Below, in pieces: positions 15,853-53,737 of a stretch of 64,000 nucleotides of DNA. The DNA is from Chiloscyllium plagiosum (taxonomy: Eukaryota). Position 1 is the first letter of the stretch. Each line of letters opens with the position of its first letter. A program made the position numbers and the translations under genes. The notes under the pieces were generated by a model that did no database searches, was not told where the DNA came from, and saw only the letters and a program-made list of their open reading frames with translations. Location of the stretch: assembly GCF_004010195.1 (NCBI RefSeq), contig NC_057746.1:16688820-16752819 (forward strand), given 5' to 3'.

Positions 15853-17268
15853 ATGGCAAATGGAACAGAAGCAACTCAATCTCTCAGCAACTTAACGGAC
15901 TTGTCTGCACCTGCAGGATGGTGCGCTTACAAAACGGTCGAAGTGGTCTGCATTGTGATTGCTACAGGAGCATTAAGTTTGGTGACTATCATTGGAAACA
16001 TTCTGGTCATTGTTTCTATCAAAATAAACAGACAATTACAAACTACTAACAACTACTTTATTTTCAGCTTAGCCTGTGCTGATTTGATCATTGGGGCATT
16101 CTCTATGAATCTTTACACTATTTATACTGTAAATGGATACTGGCCTCTGGGTCCAGTGGTATGTGATTTATGGCTTACTGTAGACTATGTTGTCAGTAAC
16201 GCCTCTGTTATGAACCTCCTTATCATAAGCTTTGACCGCTACTTCTGTGTGACAAAACCCCTTATCTACCCAGTGAAACGAACAACGAAGATGGCAGGGA
16301 TGATGGTTGCGGCTGCATGGGTGTTGTCTTTTTTCCTGTGGGCTCCTGCCATTCTCTTATGGCAGTTCATTGTAGGTGAGCGGGTTGTCGAAGAGGGCGA
16401 GTGTTACGTACAGTTCTTCTCAAATCCACCTGTCACTTTTGGCACTGCTATAATTGCCTTTTATATCCCAGTTACCATAATGGCGATTTTGTATGTGTAC
16501 ATATCTCGTGCCAGCAAGAGTCGAATGAAGGATGATAGAAATCATTCTGAATTATGTAAGGCAACTGTTACTCCAAGTGTAGTGAATAGCAAATTAATGA
16601 AACCAAACCGCACCAAAACAACAAATACTCTTGATGATTTGTTGGAGGTCAACATGAAACCTGACACAATAAGTAATGGAACATCAGGTGCCAGTTGGGT
16701 TCAAAGAAAAGCGGAGGCACTTTCCAGAGAATCTGACTTACTCAACCTGGCGTCATCAAATGCGAACAAGGAAAACGCTACACAAACGGGCACCAATTGC
16801 TTTACTGTATTTCACAATTTCAGGTCAGGCAACTTGACATGCTCTTCAATTTGCAGCAAATTTCAAAAGAATGATGTCTGTGGCATCAAGAAGCGAACAG
16901 TATCAGGGTTAAACATCAGGAATAGGAATGACAGAGAGATAAGAACAACAAATAACATTGTTAATGTGACCAGAACACATGTTAAGAGGGCAAAGGGTGC
17001 TGTATTACGAGAAAAGAAGGTAACTAGGACCATTCTGGCTATTCTCCTGGCCTTTATAATTACATGGACTCCGTACAATGTCATGGTTCTCATGGATACC
17101 TTCTGCTTAATCTGTGTCCCCAGCATAGTTTGGAACATCGGATACTGGCTCTGTTATATCAATAGTACACTAAATCCTGCCTGCTATGCATTGTGCAATA
17201 TGACCTTCAAGAAAACGTTCAAACATCTTCTCCTGTGTCAGTGCAAGAATATAAGTGCAACAAAATAA
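15853..17268 (+). CDS. CHRM2: Muscarinic acetylcholine receptor M2-like, 471 aa, single coding exon
   Basis: 7TM class A GPCR: [12 protein letters not shown]3.32 in [34 protein letters not shown] (M2 EDGE-like), [20 protein letters not shown] (Gi-type VTIL), [30 protein letters not shown] at 15853 follows a polypyrimidine tract and AG acceptor (~15826), as expected for CHRM genes with upstream non-coding exons. Symbol means M2-like; strict orthology is not established. Confidence 0.95.
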
Positions 17269-30066: not shown

Positions 30067-30566
30067 NNNNNNNNNNNNNNNNNNNNNNNNNNNNNNNNNN
30101 NNNNNNNNNNNNNNNNNNNNNNNNNNNNNNNNNNNNNNNNNNNNNNNNNNNNNNNNNNNNNNNNNNNNNNNNNNNNNNNNNNNNNNNNNNNNNNNNNNNN
30201 NNNNNNNNNNNNNNNNNNNNNNNNNNNNNNNNNNNNNNNNNNNNNNNNNNNNNNNNNNNNNNNNNNNNNNNNNNNNNNNNNNNNNNNNNNNNNNNNNNNN
30301 NNNNNNNNNNNNNNNNNNNNNNNNNNNNNNNNNNNNNNNNNNNNNNNNNNNNNNNNNNNNNNNNNNNNNNNNNNNNNNNNNNNNNNNNNNNNNNNNNNNN
30401 NNNNNNNNNNNNNNNNNNNNNNNNNNNNNNNNNNNNNNNNNNNNNNNNNNNNNNNNNNNNNNNNNNNNNNNNNNNNNNNNNNNNNNNNNNNNNNNNNNNN
30501 NNNNNNNNNNNNNNNNNNNNNNNNNNNNNNNNNNNNNNNNNNNNNNNNNNNNNNNNNNNNNNNNNN
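30067..30566. other. Assembly gap (exactly 500 N)
   Basis: Run of N. Confidence 1.
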
Positions 30567-31390: not shown

Positions 31391-32199
31391 TGAAACAAAC
31401 CCGCATCAAGACACACAGAACTTATTTAAAAATAAGTTTATAGCACTGACAATTTTACACTGTCAGAAGTAAGCCAGAGGGAAACACCAATAATCATTGG
31501 AAATGAGAATATAGTTCTTCATAAAGGTTTATGTTAAAGTATACGGGTCAGACCAATTAGCATCATTCACAACTTTTCCTCATTCTTCATTCTTGAAAAG
31601 TGACAAAGGACAATTTAGGAACCCAGGAACTTAGTTAGACATTGCTGTACAGTATGTGCTGCAGTGAAATATGTGAAACCACAGTAAAGGTGGACAAACT
31701 TATTCAAGCTGGAAGTTCACTCAGTGAAGCCAATTAAAGAGAATAGGAGTCTTTATTAAAATCAGCATGAATTATTCAGAATGCCATGAATAGTGTGAAT
31801 AATCTTTGAAAAACTATGAAGAGGACAGGATTAGTTTTAAAACCACAGACAGCTGGTTCCATTCAGTAGAGTCAGTCGAGAGGAAACAAATTGTTTATTA
31901 GGCCACACTCAGCCAGATTCCTCCATTTCTAACTACAAAGTTGGGAATGCTCCATTTTGGCTGCAAAAGCCCAGAAAAATCCTTCAATAACCAATACAGA
32001 AGACACATTGCTGGATTGTAATACACTCCTGACTTCCGCGGGAAATAGTTTGCTCTTAAAGTTTTCATTTGGGGTAATGGATTATGCTTCACCCAATCCG
32101 ATGATGTAATGAGATCTTAGTTGAGATGATCTTGTAGTCAGCACACTCGACAAAGTCGAGTAAAACACAACTGAAATGGAGAAATGAGGCAGTAAACCC

Positions 32200-32760
32200 A
32201 GATTCTGGTGACCAAGAGTTCACCAACCTCTCCAAACACTGTCAGCAGCAACAAGGTTCCATCATACAACACTTTGTTGATGGTGAACAGGCCTTGGGGA
32301 ACCAGGAGGTGAACTACTTACTGCAGAATCCCCACTCTCTCACCAACTGTTAAAACCACAGTGTTAATACTGCTGATCGCATTCAGGTTCTGGTCAGTGG
32401 AATACAACTTAATATTGATGGTGGGAGATTCAGTGATGGTAAAACCTTTGAACGTCAAAGTGGTGAGGTGAATGAAAGATGTTAAGATTCGGTCTTGTTG
32501 AAGATGGTCATTGCCTGGTACTTGTTTGGCATGAATGTGATTTCCCACTTGCTAGCCCAATTTTGTATCATGTGTCTTGCTATGTAAATACATGGACTGA
32601 TTCAGTGTCTGAGGTCTCACACTGAAAAATATCCAACCATCAGTGAACATCTTGACTTCTGACCTAAGGATGTAGTGAAGGTTATTGATGAAGGAGTTGA
32701 AAATCTTTGGACCTAACACCGTTTCGTGAGGAACACCTGCAGTGCTGTCCTGTGGCTGAG
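32200..32760 (-). mobile_element. Degenerate L2/CR1-group LINE RT fragment
   Basis: TAGVPHETVLGPKIFNSFINNL..IRSEV.MFTD = decayed [14 protein letters not shown] motifs. Confidence 0.7.
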
Positions 32761-32909
32761 ATTGCTGCACCTGAACAGTTTCACTGGGGGCACATAATGC
32801 CAAGGAATTTGTTAGGGCCCACAGTCTTTGCTATACCCCTAGGCTTTAACTGTACACCAGGTCTGGCAGGATTTGGAGGCAGTCTCAGGATGCCCATTTC
32901 CACACGGAA

Positions 32910-33250
32910 TACTTTATTCATCGAATGTGGACATCATTGACTCGGCAGCAATTTATTGTCCAGCCCCATTTCTCCAGAGGATAATTATTGTGGGTCTGAA
33001 GTCACTTTGTAGGCCCAGACCAAATAAAGACAGGATACTTCCTTGCACAAAAGGACATGAATGAACTCGATGGTTTTACAGCTATACTCATTGGGTACAT
33101 GTCCATCATGAGACTTGCTTTCAGTTCCAGGTTGTTTTTTATTTGAATTCAAACCTCACTGTCTGCCATGAGGGGATGTGAACCCATGTCCCCAGATCAT
33201 TAGCTGAGGGGATTCCCAGCCCAGTGACATCACCGCAATCACATCATCTT
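32910..33250 (-). mobile_element. Deu-domain (SacSINE-like) SINE, duplicated at ~34570-34895; related copies ~39790-40110(-) and ~51250-51500(+)
   Basis: tRNA-like head on the minus strand (GGGTTCACATCCC), GAATTCAAA, CCTTTTGTGCAAGGAAG and GGTCTGGGCCTACA core segments. Confidence 0.6.
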
Positions 33251-33489
33251 CCCACACACCAAGGATCCATTTAAACATATCTCCTCTAAAGGTCTGTGAA
33301 TGTTGGGATAATTCAAAAGGAGCTCCATATCAGAGATGATTGCATTTTTGGAGACTGAGGTTTGTCTGATATTTTGGTGATTGAAGGAGATGAAACTGAA
33401 GTTAAAAATCAGCAATGATCTCATTGGGTGGTGTAGCAGCATGAGGAGCTGAATGGTCTCTGTCCCAAAAATGAATTGCAGCTCAGCTC

Positions 33490-33660
33490 ATTCTCCCAGC
33501 AACTAGAGATGAAAGTGGAAGTGTTTAGGTAATTGGAAATTCCCAATCGTGGGCGGAGTTATGGAACCTGGTTGTTGTCTATTCTGCGGAGTCTGCTGAC
33601 TCACTGAGTCTTTTTATTGTGATTGTATCGATAATAGTTTGGGACCAATCAGTGTGAAGG
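33490..33660 (+). promoter_or_regulatory. MHC class I promoter, copy A
   Basis: GAAAGTGGAAGT IRF/ETS-like (33511-33522), GGAAATTCCC NF-kB (33535-33544), GC box (33551), S-box-like GGAACCT (33563-33569), X2/AP-1 TGACTCA (33597-33603), mutated Y box ATTGT (33622-33626), CCAAT (33645-33649). Confidence 0.75.
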
Positions 33661-33837
33661 TGTCTCGGTGAAGAGGAACGGTAACAAGAACTAAAACAAA
33701 GTGCTGAAAAATCTGTCGGGAGAGATATTGAAGATCCTTCTTCAGAACAGTTTAATATCACTCTCGATTACAGCTCACAGACTGAGACAGTCCGGTGGAA
33801 AATAATCTCTCCTCCCAGACTGTCGACTGAAGTCACG

Positions 33838-34306
33838 ATGATTGGACTGATAGTGCTGGGACTTCTGTGGGGAGAGCTCTCTGCAGGTGAGGAATGGGAG
33901 GTGAGAGAGAGGCAGAGCCAGGCTGGGAACTGGGGCTTTAACCTTTGATCATGTTACCATCAGAATGGTTTATGGGGTAATATTTATCTGTTTCTTGTTT
34001 AAACGTCAGTGAATCCACTGTTTTAAATGGATTAAGTTCGTACGAGACTTAACCATAAGGCTAGAACAAAAGATCTGTAATTGCGAAATTCAAAAGATGT
34101 ATTGAACTATACAGGGTGAAATGTAAAATTGGCAGACGTTTTTTTTAAGTAAAAGGAAAAGAGAAAAAAGTTAACAATATCACGTGATGAAGCTGAAGTG
34201 AATTGTGAAATTCTCTCCAGTGCTGGAGAAAAGGTGAACAAAATGATTCATGATTCAGGAATTCATGCTCAGATTTTTCTGTGTTTCAGAAACTCACTCT
34301 CTCTGA
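33838..34306 (+). pseudogene. Truncated MHC class I copy: leader exon 33838-33886 and alpha1 stub 34290-34306 (MIGLIVLGLLWGELSA-ETHSL*)
   Basis: Leader exon with GT donor at 33887; acceptor TGTGTTTCAG at 34289 matches the true alpha1 acceptor at 41728; stop created at the duplication junction. Confidence 0.85.
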
Positions 34307-36302
34307 CCTAAGGATGTAGTGAAGATTATTGACAAATGATTTGAAAATCTTTGGAGCAAACATTGTTTCGTGAGGAACTCCTGCAGTGCTGTCCTGTGTC
34401 TGAGATTGCTGTACCTGAACAGGTTCACTGAGGGCACATAACGCCAAGGGATTTGTTAGGGCCCACAGTCTTTGCTGTATACCCCTAAACTTTAACTGTA
34501 CACCAGGTCTGGCAGGATTTGGATGCAGTCTCAGGAAGCCCATTTCCACACGGAATACTTTAATTTAATCATCGAATGCAGACATCATTGACTAGGCAGC
34601 ATTTATTGTCCAGCCCTATTTGTCCTGAGGATAATTGCTGTGGGCCTGGAGTCACATGTAGGCCCAGACCAGATAAAGACAGGAGATTTCCTTGCACAAA
34701 AGGACATGAATGAACTCGATGGTTTTACAGCTATCACCGTTGGGTACATGTCCATCACAAGACTAGCTTTCAGTTCCAGATTGGTTTGTTTATTGACCTC
34801 ACTGTCTGCCATGAGGGGATGTGCACCCATGTCCCTAGATCATTAGCTGTGGGGATTCTCAGCCCAGTGACATGACCACTATCTCACCATCTTCCCTCAC
34901 ACGAAGGATCCATCTAAACATATCTCCTCTAAAGGTCTGTGAATGTTGGGATAATTGCAAAAACACCTCCATAATCAGGGATAATTACAGACTAAGGTTT
35001 GACTCATATTTTGGCGATTGAAGGAGATGAAACATAGAACAATACAGTGCAGAACAGGCCCTTCGGTCCTTGATGCTGAGCCGACCTGTGACCTATTCTC
35101 AGCTCGTCCCCCTACACTATCCCATCATCATCCATGTGCTTATCTAATGCTTATTTAAATCTCCCTCATGTGGCTGAGTTAACTATGTTGGCAGGTAGGG
35201 CATTCCACACCCTTACCACTCTCTGCGTAAAGAACCTGTCTCTGATATCTGTCTTAAATCTATCACCCCTCAATTTGTAGTTATACCCCCTCATACAAGC
35301 TGACATCATCATCCTAGGAAAAGGACTTTCACTGTCTACCTTATATAATCCTCTGATAATCTTGTATGTCTCAATCAAATCCCCTTTTAGCCTTCTTCTT
35401 TCCAATGAGAACAGACCCAAGTCTCTCAGCCTTTCCCCATAAGACCTTCCCTCCAGACCAGGCAACATCCTGGTAAATCTCCTCTGCACTTTTTCCAATG
35501 CTTCCAAATCCTTCCCAAAATATGGCAACCAGAACTGTACACAATATTCCAAGGTGTGACTGCACTAGTGTTTTGTATAGTTGCAGCATGATATTGCGGT
35601 TCTGGAACTCAATCCCTCTGCCAATGAAACCTAACACACCGTATGCCTTCTTAACAGCACTATCAACCTAGGTGGCAACTTTCAGGGATCTATGTACATG
35701 GACTCCAAGATCCCTAGGGCACATCCACACTACTGTGAGAAACGAAGCTCACTCACATCAATAATTTCAATCCGAGACAAAATCTGAAGCAGTAGTATCG
35801 TTTATTTTGCTCTTGCAAGAGGGATGTGGTGTCAACTATTTGTAAGATAGTCACACACACACCCAGTTTAATGGGTACACAACATTTTAAACAATCCCTT
35901 CTCAGTTTCCTCCTCCCCCACTCATCTCATTGGCGTGTCCATATGTCCAATCCGCATTCTTCTTTCTCCTTCTCCCATTGCTCCTCCCCTGTTTACATCT
36001 CCCACTACTCACACTCCTGGCACCCCTTACCCTTGTTTACTTCTTACCCTATTTGGTCTTAGGTGCAGGTATCTGCTTGGCTGTTTTTACCACATAACTT
36101 AACTGTCTTACCACAACCCTCTAGTTTATAGTTAGCGTATATCCTCTCCTATTGCTAGATGTGTATGTGTTTTGCTAAAGTGACACTCTTCCCCCTTTCT
36201 AACCCACATCGAGCCTTATGGCCCGATTGTGGTTTTTTCTGCAGATGCACAAAAAATACTGCTCATAGCTTGCTTGTGTAAACTTATCTCAATCTACATC
36301 CC

Positions 36303-36639
36303 GGATGAACTCGGATTTCACCAGTTTCCTCATTTCCCCTCCCCCCAGCCTGTCTCAGTCAAATCCATCAAATTCAGCACCGCCTTCCTAACCTGCAATC
36401 TTCTTCCCGACCTCTCCGCCCCCACCCCAGTCTGACCTATCACCCTCACCTTGACCTCTTTCCACCTATCACATTTCCGACACCCCTCCCCCAAGTCCCT
36501 CCTCCCTATCTTTTATCTTAGCCTGCTGGACCAACTTTCCTCATTCCTGAAGAAGGGCTAATGCCCGAAACGTCGATTCTCCTGTTCCCTAGATGCTGCC
36601 TGACCTGCTGCGCTTTTCCAGCAACACATTTCCATCCTT
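36303..36639 (+). mobile_element. Penelope-like element 3' terminal fragment nested in the LTR
   Basis: 12-bp TSD AATCTACATCCC (36291-36302, 36640-36651); C-rich tract; terminal repeat shared with the hairpin elements. Confidence 0.85.
36541..36580 (+). ncRNA. Candidate minimal type I hammerhead ribozyme
   Basis: CTGAAGA (36547-53), A, stem II GGGC-TAAT-GCCC, GAAA, palindromic ACGT mini stem III, GTC cleavage triplet (C36574). Confidence 0.65.
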
Positions 36640-36929
36640 AATCTACATCCCCCCTCCTATCCAGCCCTACAACCCTTGCAGACAACAACCTCCATAATCT
36701 TTTCCTTACACTACCAAGAATCTTTCCACTGACCCAATATTCTGCCTTCCTGTTATTCTTCCCAAAGTGCATCACCTCACATTTAGCTGCATTGAACTCC
36801 ATTTGCCATTTTTCAGCCCAACTCTGCAGTTTATCCAAGTCCCCCTGCAACCTGTAACATTCTTCCAAGCTGACCACTATTCCATCGACTTTAGTGTCAT
36901 CTGCAAATTTATTAATCCATCCACCTATA

Positions 36930-37402
36930 GAACATAGAACATAGAACAATACAGCACAGAACAGGCCCTTCGGCCCACGATGTTGTGCCGAACATTTGTC
37001 CTAGCTTAAGCACCCATCCATGTACCTATCCAATAGCCACTTAAAAGGGCACCAATGATTCTGACTCTGCCACTCCCACAGGCAGCGCATTCCATGCCCC
37101 CACCACTCTCGGGTAAAGAACCTACCCCTGACATCCCCCCTATACCTTCCACCCTTCACCTTAAATTTGTGTCCCCTTGTAACACTGTTGTACCCGGGGA
37201 AAAAGTCTCTGACTGTCTACTCTATTCCTCTGATCATCTTATAAACCTCTATCAAGTCACACCTCATCCTTCACCGTTCCAATGAGAAAAGGCCTAGCAC
37301 TCTCAACCTATCCTCGTACGACCTATTCTCCATTCCAGGCAACATCCTGGTAAATCTTCTCTGCACCCTCTCCAAAGCTTCCACATCTTTCCTAAAGTGA
37401 GG
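36930..37402 (-). mobile_element. Second CR1 3' end nested in the first
   Basis: (GAACATA)n tail; CTATA duplicated at 36925-36929 and 37403-37407. Confidence 0.85.
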
Positions 37403-37709
37403 CTATATCTGCATCTAAGTAATTTATAAAAATGACAAACAGTAGTGGTCCCAAAACAGATCCTTGTGGCACACCACTAGTAACCAGACTCCAGGCTGAA
37501 TATTTTCCATCAACCACTACCCGCTGCCTTCTTTCAGAGAGCCACTTTCAAATCCAAACTGTTAAATCACCCTCAATTCCATGCCTCTGCATTTTCTCCA
37601 ACAGCCTACCATGTTACCTACTGGAGTGAAGATCAGCAATCAACTCTTTGGGTGGTGTGGCAGCATCGAGGGGCTGAATGGTCTCTGTCCCGAGAATAAA
37701 TTGCAGCTC

Positions 37710-37875
37710 AGCTATTCTCGCAGCAACTGGAGATGAGAGTAGAAGTGTTTCCGTGATTGAGAAGTCCCAATCCTGGGCGGAGTTATGCAACCGGTTCTTC
37801 CGGAGCCTGATGACTCACTGACTCTTTTTATTGTGATTGGACCGGTGATATTTTGGGACCAATCAGCGTGAAGGT
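37710..37875 (+). promoter_or_regulatory. MHC class I promoter, copy B (proximal to the intact gene)
   Basis: GC box (37775), X1/X2-like CCGGAGCCTGATGACTCA (TGACTCA 37811-37817), Y box ATTGG 18 nt downstream (37836-37840), CCAATCAGCGT (37859); kB and IRF sites degenerate. Confidence 0.75.
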
Positions 37876-38060
37876 GTCTCGGTGAACAGGAACAGGAACT
37901 AAAACCGAAATTGCTAAAAATCTGTAAAGATATTGGAGTTAACGTTTTAGGTCCAGTGACCCTTCTTCAGAACAGTTTAATGCCACTTGGGTACAGCTCA
38001 CAGATTGAGACAGTCCGCTGGAAAGTAATCTTTCCTTCCAGACTGTCAACTGAAGTCACG

Positions 38061-38109
38061 ATGATTGGACTGATAGTGCTGGGACTTTTGTGGGGAAAGC
38101 TTTCTGCAG
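38061..38109 (+). CDS. MHC class I exon 1 (signal peptide MIGLIVLGLLWGKLSA)
   Basis: Hydrophobic leader, ACGATG start context, CAG|GTGAGG phase-1 donor. Confidence 0.88.
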
Positions 38110-41100
38110 GTGAGGAATGGGGGTGTGACAGAGGGGTAGAGCCAAACTGGGAACTGGCCCATTAACCTTTGATCATGTTACCATCAGAATGGTTTATGGG
38201 GTACTTTTTTTCTGATTTCATGTCTAAACGTCAGTGAATCCACAGTTTAAATTATTTAGGTTAGTACGAGACTTAACCATAAGGCGAGAACAAAAAATCT
38301 TCATTTGCAAGATTTATTGAATTTCCAAAGGGAGAAAAGTAAAAATGTAGAATTGATAGTTTTTTCATGTGAAAGAAAGAAAAAATTGCGTTGAGAGTAA
38401 AACGTTAACGACGTCACATGATGAAGTGAATTGTGAAATTTCCTCCGTTCCCCAGCGCTGGGTAACAGATGGACAAAAGGCCTTCTTGAAAACTTCACCT
38501 TATATGATTAACTCTAGTTCATCATCTCAAATCAACCTAACTGTGGTCCACACATTGACTAACTTCTCTGTTTAATTATGATTGGTTACTGACACAGGAA
38601 ACTTTCCCAGGTTTGGGAACATTGTTTCCCATTCTAAAAGATGAAAGACTTCATCTAAACTTGTTTAAGAACTATAACCTGGTGTTCTGTGACTTTTAGC
38701 TAAAGTTGTTTAATATATCATTGCAACTCCATGACACTGTAACTCTTCTGCTAAAAATTCTGTGTCATATGGTCATGTTCCACAACCACCTTTCAACACT
38801 CCTCCAAGGACATGCAGGTCCTAGGCCACCTCCAACGACAAACCCTTACCACCCAACACCTGGAGGAAGAACACCACATTTTCTGCCTTGGGACCCTCGA
38901 ACCACACGGGATCAATGTGGATTTCACCAGTTTCCTCACTTTCTCTTCCACCCCACCCCCCCCACTCCCAGTCCCAAGCCTCCAACTGGGCACCACCCTC
39001 TTGACCAGTTAATCTTCCTTTCCACTATCTGCTCGACCCTACTCCCCGACCGGTCACCTTTACTCCCACCTTCATCTACCTACCACAGTTCCAGCTACTG
39101 TCCCACCAGGCTCACCCCTCTCCAATTTATTTCTCAGCCCCCCCCCCCCCCCCTCCCTCGGCCATTATCTTAATTCCTGATGAAGAGCTTGTGTGCAAAA
39201 CATTAATTCTCCTGTTTCTCAAATGCTTCCAGACCTACTGTGCTTTTCCAGCACCATGCTCTCGATTACTATGCTTGTGTCAGAAGGCTGTTTGTAATAA
39301 GTTACCAGTGTGAGAAATTGAGAGCCACTGATGAAACATGACATCTCTGACAAGGCATGGATGGCGCTGGGAGTTGACCTCATCTCTCTCACTCTGTCTC
39401 TCTGGAACTGAACATTTTCATCACTGTAGATGAACTAATCTTCTGTCTATAAGGTGGTGGACCATCTGACTGACTGCTCAGATTGTAGAATGTCTGTTTT
39501 TTTTTATGTAAGCAGTGTATCCATTACTACATTTTCAACATTTTGATGAACAAAATGGCAGAGTGAGGTGGTGAGTGAGATATCCAAGCTGCTTCAGAGA
39601 GGATTGTGAAATTGAACACCACACCAGAGTTCATCAAAATGAAAAGCTGAGCTGGAAATCAAAATTGCTAAAGGAATGAGAGACAAACTGAGCAAATCCA
39701 GTGGAGAAACAGATCCACTGAAGGCATGGTGAGTCATGCTCTTTCCAAACTGCTCTTCCACTGGCAAACCCAATCAAAGTGTTTTTAACTTCATTCATGG
39801 AAAAGTGGGAGTCACTGGCTGGGCCAGAATTTATTACCAATCCCTAATTTTTAAGAGACAGCCCCATTGCTGTGTGTCTACACTCACGTCCAAGCCAGGC
39901 CATGTAGGGATGGCAGTTTCATTTAGGAAAAGGACTCTAATGAATCAGATGCCCTTTTCCAGGGAATTGACATGATTTCATGTTTCAGACTCCTAATTCC
40001 AGAAAACTATTGAATTCAGATTCCATCAACTGCCTTTGCAAGATTTGAACCAAGGTCCCTGGAACCTTACCTGATTATTACTCCAGTGATGATACCACTC
40101 GGTCATCCCCTCCCTGTGAACACAGATACACCATTGCCAATCACAGTGCATACACACACACTGGAGTAACTGTTCTTTCACAGCAGCTGGCTGTGAAAGA
40201 TGGGAACAGAACCTGCACAGGCCACAAATCAACCATCAGATCCCAAGGTCCACCAAACCCTAGCATTGGAAATGGAACATAAGTGAAACCAGAAGTGACA
40301 TTGGAACAACTCTCCCAGGAGAAACAGCATAATCCAGAACAGCCAACAATGAAGAACGGCACAATTTAAGACTGTAAACTATTCATGTGCAGGGACTGAC
40401 ATGAATCTTGAACTGCTGTTGTATGAAGTCATGTGTCCATTATGGTTAATCTGGATAACTCGCAATGTGAGCAATAATCTAGGCAATTCCTTTATCTGCT
40501 GCCCTTGTCCTTCTGGATTGACATGATCATAGATTTGGAAGGTGCTGTTTTCAGGAGCACATTCCAAAACCTGCCTGAAAGTTTGAGTCTCAACCCCTGC
40601 TTTGGACGGATCTGGAATTCACTTGGAAAGCAAACAGTTCCTCTGTCTTCAAACATGGTGTGAAGCTGCCATCATAGCTTGCTGCTGTGGGGCAATTTAA
40701 GGCAGAAGCTGCAATAAAATGATTGACTTATAGAATACAGCAACAACATGGCTGAAGGAAGAATTCAGCTAAAGAAGCAGGGTTACTATAGGACATCCTT
40801 GCAGTAATTAGTTGTCTCAGCAGAAGCAGGATAACACACAACTGATCATGTCAAAAGCTTTCTCTCCACTTATGCTGCCAGACCTACTGAGTTTCTCTAG
40901 CTGTTTCTGTTTTCATTTCAGATAGAGCCTATGATATCTGGTAGACCATGAACAGCTACAGTGGTTATATAACAAAGCAGATAAGGTAAGGCCTTGATGA
41001 CTGCTGAAATGAAACATTTTGCTGGAAAGCAGGCCTCCGGTCCCATATCTGAAACTTGGTCACTTCTGTTTATTAGCAAGAAGTCTTTCCAAGCAGAGCA

Positions 41101-42882
41101 TGTGACTATGGCCCTGATCACCTGGTCACGTGATGTGGGGCCCCTTAACTGATTGGATAATAGCTTTTGAAATGTATTAAATAACTATTTAATCTGTAAG
41201 ATTTCCTTTGTTCAGTGGACAAGTATCAGAACTGTCCCAGAGACTTGCTCCCTGCTGATGAAATAATAAACTCTGATAACTGAAGCAGACCTTGGGTATC
41301 ATGTGATCCTCATAGTCATTCTGTCCCTTCACTGCCATCTCCCAACTTGGAAAGAACTCTTCAAATCCGTGGCTCTAGCCCCTTGGTCGCTGACCTTCAG
41401 GTAACCTGAGGAGAGCACACACAAATGTTGGTGGAAAGGGTCAACAAGTGGCTGATGAGATTTAACGTGAACAATGCAGAGATATACATTTTGGAAGGAA
41501 AAACCTGGAAAGACAAAATAAAGAGTGAAGCTCTAAATCAGGAATAAGGGACAGAGAGTCCAGCAGTTATAAAAGTAAAAATCATAGAATGTGGATGGGC
41601 AGGTTCAGACGATGGGATCCTGGGCTTTATAAATACAGGTATAGTGTGTGAAGAGAGCTCTCTCTCAGCGTTCAGTTAGAGTGATGGGTGTTTAGGGATT
41701 CATGTACTGATTTCTTTTTGTGTTTCAGACACTCACTCTCTCCGGTATTTTGTCACTGGTATGACTCCGATTCCTGGTTTCCCAGAGTTTGTGATTGTTG
41801 GTTATGTGGATGGGGTCCAGTTTGTTATGTACAACAGCAATTGGAAGGGGTTGATTGCCCGGAAGCAGTGGATGGTGGATAGTGAAGGACCAAAGGCCTG
41901 GAACCGGAAACTATTGCTTGCTCAGGAGCAAGAAGACATTGTCAGACGCAATATTCCAAGATTTATGACACGGACCAACCAGACAGGAGGTGAGTGCTCA
42001 CCGTCCCACAGCATGACATCTTTCTGTGCGTTTGGGGAGTATGGGTGGGAATGGGAGAAATTAGGAGTGAATCTGAGTTCCAGAGACTGACTGGCTGTGG
42101 GAATGGTTGGAGGGGACACCAACTGTCTCTGTCTCTGATCAGCAACTTGTGTTTCTGATTGACAGGGATCCACATTTACCAGATGATGACTGGCTGTGAC
42201 CTGAGGGATAATGGGACTGTAAGTGGGTTCACTCTCAGAGGATGGGATGGACAAGATTTGATCAGCTTCGATAAGGATCACATGGTGTGGGTGACCCCAG
42301 TCCACTGGGCGGAAAGCATCAAAAACAGGAAGGACCAGGATGTGGTGTCTAACCATCTATGGAAGCATTTTCTGGAGGTGGAGTGCATTGAATGGCTGAG
42401 GAAATGCCTGGAGTACGGACAGAGGGAACTGAGAGTCGGTGAGGGAGTGAGAGTTGTTGTGGTGAATGATGTCTGGGCTTTTCTCTCTCTGCGTTCCTGA
42501 ACTGATTCTTCTTCCTCTTCCCCTCTCCCTCAGTTGCCCCGATCGTGTCCGTTACCCGTCTGGGTGATTTTAACTGGCTGGTCTGTCTTGTCACTGGGTT
42601 TTACCGACAAGCCATCGAGGTGACTCTATGGAGGGATGGAGTGTTGATCGATGAGCCCCTGTCCACCGGGATCTTGCCCAATCACGACAGGACCTATCAG
42701 ATCCGGAAATGGATAGAGTTTGATCCAGAGGACCAGGCCGAGTATTCCTGTCAGGTGGAGCACAGCGGATTGGAGGAGAAGCTGGTGGTGATTTATGGTA
42801 AGACTCATTCTCACTGTTAGAGAGGAACCAGGATCACAAGAGAGAGAGGACCAGCTGAGCTGCTTCAGCAGGACGCTCCAGG

Positions 42883-45900: not shown

Positions 45901-48900
45901 AGCCAGGTTGAGTCTACTACATCTCATCAGGCAGTGATTCTGGTGATCAAAAACAGTTATTTCCAAATTGGGGGTAGTCTGTATTCAGGAAGACAGCAGC
46001 AAGTTACAGAAAGGCATTAACAAACCTTCAAACTGAACAAATGATTGGTAAGTGAAGTAGAGGAACAAAACAATCTCAGAGAAAAAACACCCAATTACTG
46101 AATGTTGTGCACAGATTAGAGTCCTACAGCACGGACACAGGCCCTTTGGCTGAAACTGGTCCGTGCCAATCAAAATATTCATCACCACTACCCCCATTTC
46201 CCTTCACTTGACCCATATCCTTCTAAGTTGAAACTTTATTGCTGGAACAGCACAGCAGGTCAGGCAGCATCCAGGGAACAGGAGATTCGACGTTTCGGGC
46301 ACAGGCCCTTCTTCAGGAGGGCCTGTGCCCGAAACGTCGAATCTCCTGTACCCTGGATGCTGCCTAACCTGCTGTGCTGTTCCAGCAATAAAGTTTCAAC
46401 TTTGATCTCCAGCATCTGCAGACCTCACTTTCTCCCCATATCCTTCTAAACCTTTCCCTGTCCATGTATTTGTCCAAATGCCTTTTACACGGTGGTAATG
46501 TACCACCCTCTGCGAAAACATTGTCCCTCAGCTTCCCTTTTATTCTTTCCCCTGCAACCTTAAACTGATGCCCTGTAGCCTTTGATTCCCCAACCCTATT
46601 AAAGCGACTGAGTGCATTCACCTTATCCATGCCTCTAGTGATCTTATACGTTTCTGTAAGATCCTCCCCCACCTTCATTTCCTACACTCTAAAGAAAAAA
46701 GTCCTAGTTTGCCCAACTTCTCCTTCTAACTTAGTCCCTTGTGTCTTGGCAACTGCCTTGTAAATTTCTTCTGCACGCTTTCCAGTTTAATAACATCCTT
46801 CCTATTAGCAAAGTGACCAAAACCACAATACTGCAAGTGCAGCCTCACCAATGTTCTGTACCACTGCAATATAACTTCCCAACTTCTATACTCAATGCCC
46901 TGACTGATGAAGGCTGATGTGCCAAAAGCTGCCTTCAATGTCCTGTCTACTTGTGACTCTACTTTCAGAGAACCATGCAACTGAACTCCAAGGTCCCTCT
47001 GTTCCACTACATTCCTTAATGCACTACCATTCACCATGAAACTCGTGCTTTGATTTGAGTTTCCAAAATGAAGACCTCGCATGTATCTGCATTAAACTCC
47101 ATTTGCCATTTCTCTGCTCATTTCCCCAGCTGATCAAGGACCTGCTGCAATTTCTGATCACCTTCCTCGCTGTATTTGATACTGCCTATTTCAGTATCAT
47201 CTGCAAACTTACTAACCATGCCTTGTACATTCTCATCCAAATCGTTGATATAGATAACAAACAGCAATGGGCCCAGCACCAATCCACTGATTCTTGTGGC
47301 ACTCCAATGGTCACAGGCCTCCAGTCTGACAAGCATCCTTCCGTTATTACCTGCTACTTTCTAACAAATGTGTATTCAATTTGCCAGCTCCCCCTGGATT
47401 CCATTCAATCTAACCTTCAGAGCAGCCTACCATGAGGAATCTTAGCAAAGGCCTTACTGAAATCCATATACTGCCCTGCCCTCATCAACCTTCCCGGTCA
47501 CTTTATCAAAGAACTATAACAAATTTGTGAGGCATGATCTCCCATTCACACAGTCATGCTGAGTATTCCTAATCAAACTGTCTTTCCAAATGCATATAAT
47601 ATCTTATCTCAGAATCTTCTCAAGTAACTTACCTACCACAGATGTTCGGCTGACTGGTCTATCGTTCCCAGGATTTTCTTTGCAGCCCGCATAACCTTCA
47701 CTACTGTCCATAACTTCCATGACCTCACCCCGTGGATAACAATTAGAAAGGGCATTTTTTTATGAACAACCTGAGGATAGGCTTTAATTTTTAGAGGAGA
47801 TTTAGCATATGCCACCTCACCTTCAATTCTACCTTGAAGTTTGGTTAGACCACATATTGAGAACTGCAGACAGTTCCGGTCACCATGTGATATAAAGGAT
47901 ATTGAGGCACTGGAGAGAGTGCTGAGAAGATTTACAATGTCAATATCAGAAACGTGTGAGTGTATGTATCAGGAAAGGATTGAGAGGCTTGATGTCTTCT
48001 CTCTTGAATGATGGAGCCTGAATAGAGATCTTTAAAATGATGAATCATTTTGAAAGAGTGGGTGCAGAGAGAATGTTTGTGGAAGGGCACAACTAGGGAC
48101 TATCAACACAAGGCAGTCACCAAATATTCCGCATGGGATTGCAGAGAAGCTTTGACAGTCGGACCATGAGGAGAATGTGAATCTTGCTGCTGAAGGGAGT
48201 GAGATTGTCAAGATATATTTAGAGGGAAATTAGAAAGGAATCAGGAGTGATGGTGATAGATATAAATGAGAAAGGAATGTGGAGCTTCAAGAGACTAAAT
48301 ACAGGTGTATGTTGATTGGACCAAATGGGTTCAGTGTGTGCCTTTTATTTTCTTCTTTCTCTCTCTTCATGCCTCACTCGGCTCTCTGTCTCTCTGTGAC
48401 AGACCCAAAGTCTCATGCCCAGGTTCCTGTTCCTATTGGGATTGTATTCGGAGTCCTCTGGATCATCTCTCTCTCTGTTGTGGCTGTCACCATTTACAAG
48501 AAGAAAGGTTGGAGGTTTTGAGAAAATGGCAGCTCCTCACGGTTGGGGGTTTCAGGGAATTGGAAATGATCCCAGCGATGAAGAGCTTGTTATATGATGA
48601 GCTGTTGAGGACTCTGCGTGCGTACTGGATGGAGTTGAAAATGTTGAGAGCAAATCTCATGAAAAGTATACATTACTGAGAGGAGTGGATGTGGAGAAGA
48701 TGTAGGAGACACGAGGACCCAAGGGAACAGCCTCCGTGTGACGGGATGACCTTTTAGAACTGAGGAGGAATTTCCTCAGTGGTGACTCTGTGGAACCCAT
48801 TGCTGCAGAAGGTTGTGGAGGCCAAGACATTGAGTGTCTTTAAGACAGAGATAGGTTCTTGATTGGTAAACGGCTCAAGGTTACAGTGAGAAGGCAGGAG

Positions 48901-50019
48901 AATGAGGTTGAGAAATATATCAACCACAGTGGGCTGAATGGCCTAATTCTGCTCTATATCTTATAGTCTCCAGTTGATAGTTTTGGTTCAGAGGTGGGCA
49001 AGGAACGTCTGTGTTTGGGTGTCAGTCTCAGGGTTAGTGATAGCTCAGGCAGTGGGGAGAGGGCATTAGTTTGTGAAGGAGGGTCTAAGCGTCCCTTCGT
49101 ATGGAGATTGTTCCCTTGGATCCTACTCTAACTTGTTCCTCAGGTTAGGCTGGAGTGTCTCAGGGGTTGGAGTCTCACGTTGTGAGTGTGAGGTCAGACA
49201 GTTCAGATTGGGGCTGGGTCTCAGTTCACTGTTGGGCATAAACAGCTCAGGGCAATGTGGGTAGGAGAGGCTGAGTCTGGATGGGAGTGAGGGTCTTCAG
49301 CATTTCCTCTGACGTTCTGACACTGACTGAACATTCCTTGTTTTACAGGGGGAATGAAAAATGACTACAATCCAACAAACAGTAAGCTGATAATTCAGAC
49401 ATCTCAGCGTCTGTGTTAGTGTATGACAAGCTGTTCTTTCTGTTTCACACAAAGAACCACAAACGCAGAGATCTGAAACAGAAAAAAGCAGAAATTGCTG
49501 GAGAAACTCAGTAGGTTTGGCAGCAGCTGTGGAGAGAAAAACACAGTTAACATTGAGTCCAGTGACTTTTTGTTCTGGGAGTTCTGTTGTGTGAGTGTGT
49601 GGCAGTGGAGTGGGTGGGGGTCGGGGTCACTGGATCTAAAGCATTACTTCTGCTTCCTCTCTCTCCACAGATGCAGGCAGACATGCTGAGATTCTCCAGC
49701 AATTTTTTTGTTCTGTCTGGTCTAGACTGGTCTATCTGTCTTTCGTTCTCCTGTTGGTCTCATGTGCTCTCTCTCTCTCTCATACACTCTTTCTTTCTTT
49801 TACATCTGTGGGTCATTTTTGCTCTCACTCCTGTTCCGCTCTCTCTCATTTCTTTTGCTTACGCTTCCTCTCTTGCATTTTTCTCTATAACGCCCTTTCT
49901 CTCACACTCATGTTTCTCACTCTCTCTTTCGCTCTGATAATGAGCAGTTTCTAATGCCTCTCTTTCCGTTAACAGCTTCTGATAAAAGGACATCCTCAGA
50001 CAGTTCTGTCATTTCCTGA
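38061..50019 (+). CDS. Non-classical MHC class I heavy chain, join(38061-38109,41729-41989,42166-42438,42534-42797,48403-48507,49349-49381,49976-50019), 342 aa
   Basis: All six introns GT-AG and phase 1; spliced length 1029 nt, open to TGA at 50017-50019; leader, alpha1, alpha2, alpha3, TM and two cytoplasmic exons. Tentatively resembles the elasmobranch UBA lineage from memory (MTPIPG, GWDG, WVTPV), not verified. Confidence 0.93.
38740..39270 (+). mobile_element. Penelope-like 3' fragment in MHC intron 1
   Basis: LEEEHHIFCLGTLEPHGINVDF GIY-YIG C-terminus, C-rich tract, decayed CTGATGAAG...AAAC motif. Confidence 0.8.
40960..41331 (+). mobile_element. Possible solo LTR in MHC intron 1
   Basis: Ordered CTGATTGG, TATTTAA, AATAAA and a CA end, but no clear TSD. 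Confidence 0.35.
41729..41989 (+). CDS. MHC class I exon 2 (alpha1)
   Basis: DTHSLRYF..PEFVIVGYVDG..W..EGP..W..NQT glycosylation site; TTTCAG acceptor, G|GTGAGT donor. Confidence 0.96.
42166..42438 (+). CDS. MHC class I exon 3 (alpha2)
   Basis: GIHIYQMMTGC..WDGQD..W..ECIEWL, C101/C164 pair; GACAG acceptor, G|GTGAGG donor. Confidence 0.96.
42534..42797 (+). CDS. MHC class I exon 4 (alpha3, Ig C1 domain)
   Basis: LVCLVTGFY..W.RDG..LPNHD.TYQ..YSCQVEHSGL; CCTCAG acceptor, G|GTAAGA donor. Confidence 0.96.
42885..42914 (+). repeat. (AG)n microsatellite
   Basis: About 15 uninterrupted AG units. Confidence 0.95.
43530..45335 (+). mobile_element. CR1 LINE, internally deleted, in MHC intron 4
   Basis: VPLFKK..PGNYRPVNLT..SQHGF, RRRGDLIEVYKI, RVVHVWNELP, CTATGACT tail. 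Confidence 0.9.
43672..43891 (+). mobile_element. Penelope-derived hairpin mini-element
   Basis: Inverted arms plus constant tail; 13-bp TSD AGGCTGTAGGAGT (43659-43671, 43892-43904). Confidence 0.85.
46115..47690 (-). mobile_element. CR1 LINE RT/3' part in MHC intron 4
   Basis: [37 protein letters not shown]. Confidence 0.9.
46227..46434 (+). mobile_element. Penelope-derived hairpin mini-element
   Basis: Near-perfect ~175-nt palindrome (46226-46401) plus tail; 15-bp TSD CCCATATCCTTCTAA (46212-46226, 46435-46449); intact hammerhead core on the minus strand (46316 to 46289). Confidence 0.9.
48403..48507 (+). CDS. MHC class I exon 5 (connecting peptide and transmembrane)
   Basis: DPKSHAQVPVPIGIVFGVLWIISLSVVAVTIYKKK; long pyrimidine tract and GACAG acceptor; phase 1/1. 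Confidence 0.9.
48560..48970 (+). mobile_element. Old CR1 3' end in MHC intron 5 (similar relics at ~47800-48340 and ~50560-51040)
   Basis: Decayed ORF2 C-terminus and GGGCTGAATGGCCTAATTCTGCTC 3'UTR. Confidence 0.7.
49349..49381 (+). CDS. MHC class I exon 6 (cytoplasmic, GGMKNDYNPTN)
   Basis: 33-nt phase 1/1 exon, TTACAG acceptor, A|GTAAGC donor, conserved class I cytoplasmic Tyr. Confidence 0.85.
49976..50019 (+). CDS. MHC class I exon 7 (cytoplasmic, TSDKRTSSDSSVIS*)
   Basis: AACAG acceptor; SD..SDSS like the class I SDxS motif; TGA followed after 1 nt by a G|GTATGA donor, so a further 3'UTR exon is likely. Confidence 0.82.
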
Positions 50020-53237: not shown

Positions 53238-53737
53238 NNNNNNNNNNNNNNNNNNNNNNNNNNNNNNNNNNNNNNNNNNNNNNNNNNNNNNNNNNNNNNN
53301 NNNNNNNNNNNNNNNNNNNNNNNNNNNNNNNNNNNNNNNNNNNNNNNNNNNNNNNNNNNNNNNNNNNNNNNNNNNNNNNNNNNNNNNNNNNNNNNNNNNN
53401 NNNNNNNNNNNNNNNNNNNNNNNNNNNNNNNNNNNNNNNNNNNNNNNNNNNNNNNNNNNNNNNNNNNNNNNNNNNNNNNNNNNNNNNNNNNNNNNNNNNN
53501 NNNNNNNNNNNNNNNNNNNNNNNNNNNNNNNNNNNNNNNNNNNNNNNNNNNNNNNNNNNNNNNNNNNNNNNNNNNNNNNNNNNNNNNNNNNNNNNNNNNN
53601 NNNNNNNNNNNNNNNNNNNNNNNNNNNNNNNNNNNNNNNNNNNNNNNNNNNNNNNNNNNNNNNNNNNNNNNNNNNNNNNNNNNNNNNNNNNNNNNNNNNN
53701 NNNNNNNNNNNNNNNNNNNNNNNNNNNNNNNNNNNNN
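53238..53737. other. Assembly gap (exactly 500 N)
   Basis: Run of N. Confidence 1.

Follow-up and report, generated by a model that had tools for sequence, protein, structure and literature searches.

A second promoter-like region and leader exon in front of a Chiloscyllium plagiosum class I gene, probably inherited from a deleted neighboring paralog

[quoted passage not shown] In front of the gene, the segment at 32658-34303 (copy A) is a diverged copy of the gene's own promoter region, 5′-untranslated region (5′UTR), leader exon, both ends of intron 1 and the first 14 nt of the alpha1 exon; the corresponding parts of the gene itself are called copy B. This arrangement raises the question of where the additional 5′ end came from and whether the gene still uses it. 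The answer that we favor, with a confidence only a little above even, is that copy A is the 5′ end of an upstream paralog that has been deleted, and that it now serves the surviving gene as an alternative first exon.

An earlier note on this DNA, made from its letters alone, had described a tandem copy approximately 4.2 kb upstream of the gene with a promoter, a leader, a 403-nt intron, an acceptor and the residues ETHSL, and both blastn and a global alignment agree with that description and its coordinates. Alignment of the upstream copy to the gene, which the note had proposed, gives three collinear blastn matches, namely 32658-33396 to 34302-35033 (87.9% over 749 columns, E 0.0), 33395-34076 to 37620-38300 (83.1% over 703 columns, E 1e-173) and 34254-34303 to 41691-41742 (82.7% over 52 columns, E 6e-7). 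In the global alignment, 742 of 861 aligned columns (86%) are identical between the two copies, and the intron homology extends to approximately 34244 in copy A and 38478 in copy B. By segment, the identity is 90.7% in the distal upstream part (654/721 bases), 87.7% in the promoter and 5′UTR, 46/49 in the leader, 85.0% in the 5′ part of the intron, and 82.8% in the 3′ end of the intron together with the alpha1 start; Jukes-Cantor distances across the segments are 0.06-0.20. The leader ATGs, at 33838 and 38061, are 4223 nt apart. The two leaders have the same length (49 nt) and phase (1) and identical donors of equal score (from a rough score table), and each lies behind promoter-like DNA. Leader A ends in ..GELSA and leader B in ..GKLSA, and leader B differs from leader A by E13K.

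The copy A alpha1 acceptor (tttcag/AA) at 34290 is followed by 14 nt of alpha1, after which the repeated unit begins anew at the 34303 junction. This junction is non-homologous: its two sides have only 2 nt in common, the TC at 34302-34303, which equals the TC at 32658-32659 and can be assigned either to alpha1 or to the beginning of the repeated unit. It creates the ETHSL-stop that the earlier note had already read in the sequence. The coordinates of all features are collected in Table 1. As a separate observation on intron 1, 39 consecutive bases (33941-33979 and 38165-38203) are identical in the two copies, with shorter identical blocks nearby, in surroundings of about 85% identity; this block may be a conserved intronic element or may be due to chance (rough estimate ~0.1).

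Table 1. Features of the class I gene and of the duplicated 5′ end in front of it, in window positions.
Feature	Position	Strand	Description and basis
Copy A upstream/promoter-like region and 5′UTR	32658-33837	+	Homology to copy B, motif scan, contigs of runs X9 and X15
Leader exon A	33838-33886	+	49 nt, phase 1, MIGLIVLGLLWGELSA, donor CAG/GTGAGG; RefSeq isoform X3 residues 1-16
Copy A intron remnant	33887-34289	+	403 nt; 5′ part similar to 38110-38478 (85%), last ~45 nt to 41682-41728 (83%)
Copy A alpha1 remnant and junction stop	34290-34306	+	14 nt, ETHSL, then TGA at 34304-34306 across the junction
Copy B distal upstream region	34304-35033	+	Homologous to 32660-33396 (87.9% by blastn; 90.7% of aligned bases)
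Nested high-copy repeat insertion	35034-37619	.	2.6 kb, splits the copy B upstream region, absent from copy A; gap in A/B alignment
Copy B proximal promoter-like region and 5′UTR	37620-38060	+	Alignment, motif scan
Leader exon B	38061-38109	+	49 nt, MIGLIVLGLLWGKLSA, donor same as in A
Copy B intron 1	38110-41728	+	3619 nt; ~3.2 kb without counterpart in copy A
Alpha1 exon	41729-41989	+	DTHSLRYFVTG..., acceptor common to both leaders; Pfam MHC_I, 100% to RefSeq proteins
Alpha2 exon	42166-42438	+	Pfam, structure match, RefSeq mapping
Alpha3 (C1-set) exon	42534-42797	+	Pfam, RefSeq mapping
Connecting peptide/transmembrane exon	48403-48507	+	RefSeq mapping; missing in RefSeq isoforms X4-X6
Cytoplasmic exon	49349-49381	+	RefSeq mapping; then alternative last coding exons starting at 49976 and 51201

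Use of leader A by the gene is already modeled in the public annotation. A HMMER search with the alpha1 exon led to shark proteins, and a search with one of these proteins, together with blastp, led to P0169 (XP_043533916.1), to which alpha1 and alpha2 are 100% identical (blastp of single exon products). The 90% cluster of this protein comprises seven distinct C. plagiosum isoform sequences (X1-X7). Isoforms X1, X2, X4, X5 and X6 begin with MPLGYSS...TMIGLIVLGLLWGKLSA-DTHSL, that is, with leader B; isoform X3 (P0267, XP_043533917.1) begins with MIGLIVLGLLWGELSA-DTHSL; and isoform X7 starts at an internal methionine of alpha1. Residues 1-43 of X1 and X2 map to 37980-38108. Residues 1-16 of X3 map at 100% identity to 33838-33885, and those that follow map to alpha1 at 41729, such that the annotation splices leader A to the intact alpha1 exon across 7.8 kb. 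The earlier note had proposed leader A as an in-frame alternative first exon to 41729, and isoform X3 is a model of exactly this combination.

Contigs of four sequencing runs, from organisms labeled A and B, were aligned on 32600-38599 and are taken to indicate presence only, not level or absence. Run X9 (organism A) includes a 415-nt contig (record 26) that lies on 33554-33886 with three differences and whose match ends exactly at the leader-A donor; its 82 further letters match nowhere in 32600-38599 and hence do not correspond to the near acceptor at 34290. These letters may be alpha1 of the copy B gene, or alpha1 of an intact upstream paralog in another haplotype. A contig from a different study, record 9 of run X15 (also organism A), covers 33629-33867 and shows these three differences as well, so that the leader-A 5′UTR and exon are covered by contigs in 2/2 organism-A runs aligned. 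The earlier note had expected a start site near 33700, which is not supported; the leader-A contig extends back to 33554, which places at least some starts at or before that position. The leader-B region has a depth of 0 over 38000-38199 in run X9 and is represented in run X15 by one contig, on 37964-38087, at 94% identity. That contig carries 38005 T>C and 38038 C>T, both shared with organism-B DNA and the C. punctatum protein; candidate explanations are a highly diverged allele, an old polymorphism common to the two, or one more paralog. Because the best donor-like site after 34303, by the same rough scoring, is at 35194, 890 nt beyond the near acceptor, the alpha1 stub would not easily be defined as an exon, which favors splicing to the far acceptor. 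The interpretation that leader A joins alpha1 of the intact gene as an alternative first exon is thus supported by the isoform models and the contigs.

The relatives of the gene bear on the origin of copy A. The 839-residue protein XP_072406583.1 (P0273) of Chiloscyllium punctatum is a read-through model that fuses two neighboring class I genes: it joins a complete class I sequence (MIGLIVLGLLWGELSA-ETHSL..., alpha1 ETHSLRYFVTGL...) to the ortholog of the present gene with a B-type 5′UTR. In C. punctatum, the ortholog is therefore immediately preceded by a full paralog. The first alpha1 codon of copy A encodes E (GAA). E is also the first alpha1 residue of the C. punctatum upstream paralog and of the Hemiscyllium proteins P0166, P0168 and P0194, and D is that of both Chiloscyllium orthologs; E vs D is the only diagnostic residue, and the gene order is that suggested by C. 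punctatum protein models. In the protein tree, the upstream gene of C. punctatum clusters with genes of Hemiscyllium (97/94), and together they are sister to the present gene and its ortholog (100/100). This makes the split an old one, in agreement with the A/B distance (Jukes-Cantor, 0.10-0.20), which is several times as large as the 3-6% divergence between the window and organism-B contigs. Among the 41 proteins nearest to Hemiscyllium P0168, the sole C. plagiosum entry is the window gene. Despite the divergence, copy A has kept an intact leader open reading frame (ORF) and both of its splice sites. The earlier note had left the origin as either a partial duplication or a deletion within an upstream paralog; both predict the observed structure, and the evidence leans to the deletion, which is probably the origin of copy A. 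Separately, an older C. punctatum annotation (chiPu_0016016; P0019, P0018) combines a third alpha1 type with the same alpha3 and transmembrane part, a pairing that may point to additional paralogs or to haplotypes that differ in their gene content.

Some indication of age comes from run X13 (organism-B DNA), whose contigs lie on the A-like part at 33151-33463 (94%, without the insertion) and on B-like parts, reach 8 nt into the repeat insertion of copy B and cover 35745-36021. Both copies and the insertion therefore seem to be older than the organism-B split. Run X16 carries the same organism label as run X13 and, within 34732-34979, has the letters of the window at 34739, 34758, 34858 and 34931, where X13 differs; these two runs may not be one taxon, and X16 was not counted as a second species.

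A feasible model may be that a formerly complete upstream tandem paralog, as is still present in C. punctatum, was removed by a non-homologous deletion with 2-nt microhomology, extending from alpha1 codon 6 of the paralog to the region upstream of the downstream gene, which would have left the promoter and leader of the neighbor in front of the surviving gene. Leaders A and B, each behind its own promoter-like region, could then both be joined to the alpha1 acceptor at 41729, and the acceptor at 34290 would be a dead end, with a stop after 5 codons. Leader A would provide a plain 16-residue signal peptide, whereas the 5′UTR in front of leader B contains an in-frame ATG at 37980, from which translation would extend the signal peptide N-terminally by 27 residues. 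Five RefSeq isoforms are modeled from this ATG, and the reading from it (LMPLGYSS...) is kept in C. punctatum. The mature protein would be the same with either leader, and any effect would therefore be on regulation.

Class I promoters canonically contain a module of a kappaB enhancer, an interferon-stimulated response element (ISRE) and S-X-Y elements, with kappaB and ISRE upstream of the X/Y and CCAAT boxes. In a motif scan, copy A has kappaB-like sites at 33208-33217 (GGGGATTCCC) and 33535-33544 (GGGAATTTCC), and further motifs at 33392 (GAAACTGAAG), 33551 (GC box), 33597 (TGACTCA) and 33645 (CCAAT). Its two kappaB-like sites and its IRF-like site have been lost from copy B, in which the scan found no kappaB-like site; the GC box, TGACTCA and CCAAT are retained there, together with an ATTGG not present in copy A. 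A repeat fragment of ~20 nt is inserted in the proximal promoter of copy B, and the large repeat insertion splits the place of the IRF-like site and cuts off the upstream region. Within this insertion the summed contig depth reaches 1.5 million in DNA run X13 and 211,000 in run X9, compared with ~5-10 in single-copy parts, and the very-high-copy repeats lie mainly at 36200-37600. The extra ~3.2 kb of the copy B intron (38480-41690) is likewise rich in repeats, and no Rfam family matches 32000-42000 at the gathering threshold. It is tempting to speculate that a promoter swap has occurred, in which the captured promoter with its kappaB and IRF sites and its clean signal-peptide exon is now the main, inducible one, the gene's own promoter having been cut off. 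We regard this extension of the model as doubtful. Such an arrangement may differ between Chiloscyllium species or haplotypes and, if true, it would offer a natural experiment on how class I genes are regulated in the oldest jawed vertebrates.

Several observations weigh against a captured first exon that is in use. The contig of run X9 shares its three differences from the window with the contig of run X15; run X9 is labeled 'DNA?', and non-exonic parts are among those that it covers. Should the upstream paralog be intact in some individuals, this contig could be the paralog's own mRNA. Reads of a paralog could likewise mimic the isoform X3 junction, given the near identity of the first 11 alpha1 residues. 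The kappaB pattern is not enriched, with 4 matches in the window against 5.55 expected from shuffles, and because the count is not above chance the promoter motifs of copy A are suggestive only. A truncated copy A could also sit between both genes in the relatives, which would favor an old partial duplication. That copy A is merely a pseudogene fragment, its transcripts noise or degraded, isoform X3 an artefact of the annotation pipeline and promoter B the only promoter, nevertheless appears improbable. The presence of leader B in 5/6 leader-bearing RefSeq isoforms would fit such a dead remnant, as would a leader-A splice target that is not visible in the contig evidence and a near acceptor that leads to a stop. 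However, a dead remnant does not account well for an intact leader ORF with a donor equal to that of copy B, or for contig coverage of leader A in both organism-A runs, in one of them with a splice-like end that is not at 34290. Furthermore, it is leader B that is absent from the contigs of run X9 and found only at 94% in run X15, and it is the gene's own promoter in copy B that looks more decayed.

With respect to origin, an old partial tandem duplication would have copied in place the DNA from ~1.2 kb upstream of the ATG to alpha1 codon 5 in the ancestor of this gene. In that case the junction would date from the A/B divergence, and the complete C. punctatum upstream gene would have to be considered separately. 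The structure, exactly X..Y/X..Y with a 2-nt microhomology, is what this event would produce, and it agrees with an A/B divergence several times that of the species and with the presence of organism-B contigs of run X13 on both A-like and B-like parts. The same structure is predicted by a deletion, however, and copy A carries the E of the upstream paralog rather than the D of the B lineage. In addition, a full C. punctatum gene stands where C. plagiosum has copy A, with no intact C. plagiosum counterpart among the proteins listed, and retention of the ORF and splice sites at such divergence is not what one would expect of an unused remnant; in situ duplication is thus, in our judgment, rather unlikely. 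Far less probable still is an assembly artefact, with a misjoin or haplotype collapse at 34303 and a complete upstream gene in the actual genome. This would be in line with the difficulty of assembling MHC regions and with the variation in gene content suggested by the C. punctatum annotations, and no independent read or contig of the four runs was seen to bridge 34303, which also counts against the deletion itself. On the other hand, with only 2 nt common to both sides of the junction, no repeat is present that could have led to a collapse; at a divergence of 12-17% the copies do not resemble an assembly duplicate; there is no run of N near the junction (those of the window are only at 30067-30566 and 53238-53737); and no orphan upstream-paralog protein is listed for C. 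plagiosum. Deletion of most of an upstream paralog remains the origin that we prefer.

The assignment of the gene itself is based on its exon products. Alpha1 and alpha2 match Pfam MHC_I PF00129 (E 2.4e-16 and 6.3e-18, respectively), alpha3 matches Pfam C1-set PF07654 (E 6.3e-15), and the best solved-structure match is the shark structure 6lup (E 3.5e-26). The layout, with exon boundaries read against the RefSeq proteins, is that of a class I heavy chain: one domain per exon in phase 1, a C1-set alpha3 and transmembrane and cytoplasmic exons. The transmembrane exon is missing from RefSeq isoforms X4, X5 and X6, which read ..VVIYGGMKND.. or ..VVIYGASD.. and would give a class I chain with no membrane anchor. 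A second class I gene in the window is rejected: tblastn with the three exon products and with the C. punctatum upstream paralog gave no hits beyond the exons already described and leaders A and B.

In a tree of 33 proteins, the gene falls in a 19-row clade (100/99) with O19479 and O19480, and the classical Triakis, 6LUP and class IA rows form a separate clade. O19479 and O19480 are presumably the sequences of a 1997 paper. In two reviews, UBA is the name given to the expanded shark family that goes back to the 1997 sequences, and the lineage is described as a multicopy, nonclassical cluster derived from UAA (PMC12562908, PMC10751288). The grouping with O19479/O19480 resembles what is expected of the UBA lineage, and a multicopy UBA fits the gain and loss of genes considered here. 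The gene would accordingly be a nonclassical member of the UBA clade, a name that rests on a review passage and on the presumed origin of the two sequences. Neither c4 nor rxrb, which flank the multicopy UBA cluster, is in the 64-kb window.

Alternative units of a promoter plus a first exon that are spliced to common exons are well known from UGT1A and the clustered protocadherins. The shark gene resembles these systems in its tandem copies of promoter and first exon, which have their own donors and one shared acceptor, such that promoter choice would decide the first exon. It differs from them in that there are two units only, that the first exon encodes the signal peptide only and leaves the mature protein unchanged, and that the upstream unit carries a stub of exon 2, probably from a deleted whole gene. 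A second comparison is with the D/L hybrid class I gene of mouse H-2 dm1, which arose when two tandem paralogs merged by loss of the intervening DNA (PMC2187929). If the deletion holds, the shark locus likewise has its 5′ part from the upstream gene and its 3′ part from the downstream gene. By contrast, the dm1 junction lies at homologous places in exon 3 and yields a chimeric protein, whereas the shark junction is non-homologous, the downstream gene is whole and has its own promoter, and the joining would take place by splicing. Unequal crossing-over of the dm1 or Lepore type does not describe the shark junction, in which alpha1 codon 5 is joined to DNA that lies 1.2 kb (without the insertion) upstream of the other ATG.

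A duplicated leader or promoter in a shark class I gene is not mentioned in the portions of main text available from PMC10751288, PMC12562908 and PMC7677710, and literature searches, supplements excluded, found no publication describing the structure or its origin. The leader-A isoform itself is already in the public annotation, and both alternative first exons and hybrid genes of class I are already familiar; with the mature protein unchanged, the surprise to a specialist is modest. The preferred account, a captured first exon, would explain both why the RefSeq isoforms form such an odd set and how the read-through model of 839 residues in C. punctatum came about. It would also imply that gene loss in a birth-and-death family can rewire a surviving neighbor, the promoter and leader of the dead gene being used through splicing, and that functional first exons can go unnoticed behind class I gene counts and supposed 'pseudogene' fragments of shark genomes.

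The only neighboring gene found in the window is a muscarinic M2-like receptor gene. It is an intact intron-less G protein-coupled receptor ORF of 471 residues at 15853-17265 (+) with a Pfam 7tm_1 match (E 3.8e-60), located 16.6 kb upstream of leader A on the same strand, and it exactly matches a protein on the same contig. A synteny comparison through this gene yielded no order of genes. In Hemiscyllium, which has two copies, and in C. punctatum, its relatives carry the name muscarinic acetylcholine receptor M2-like.

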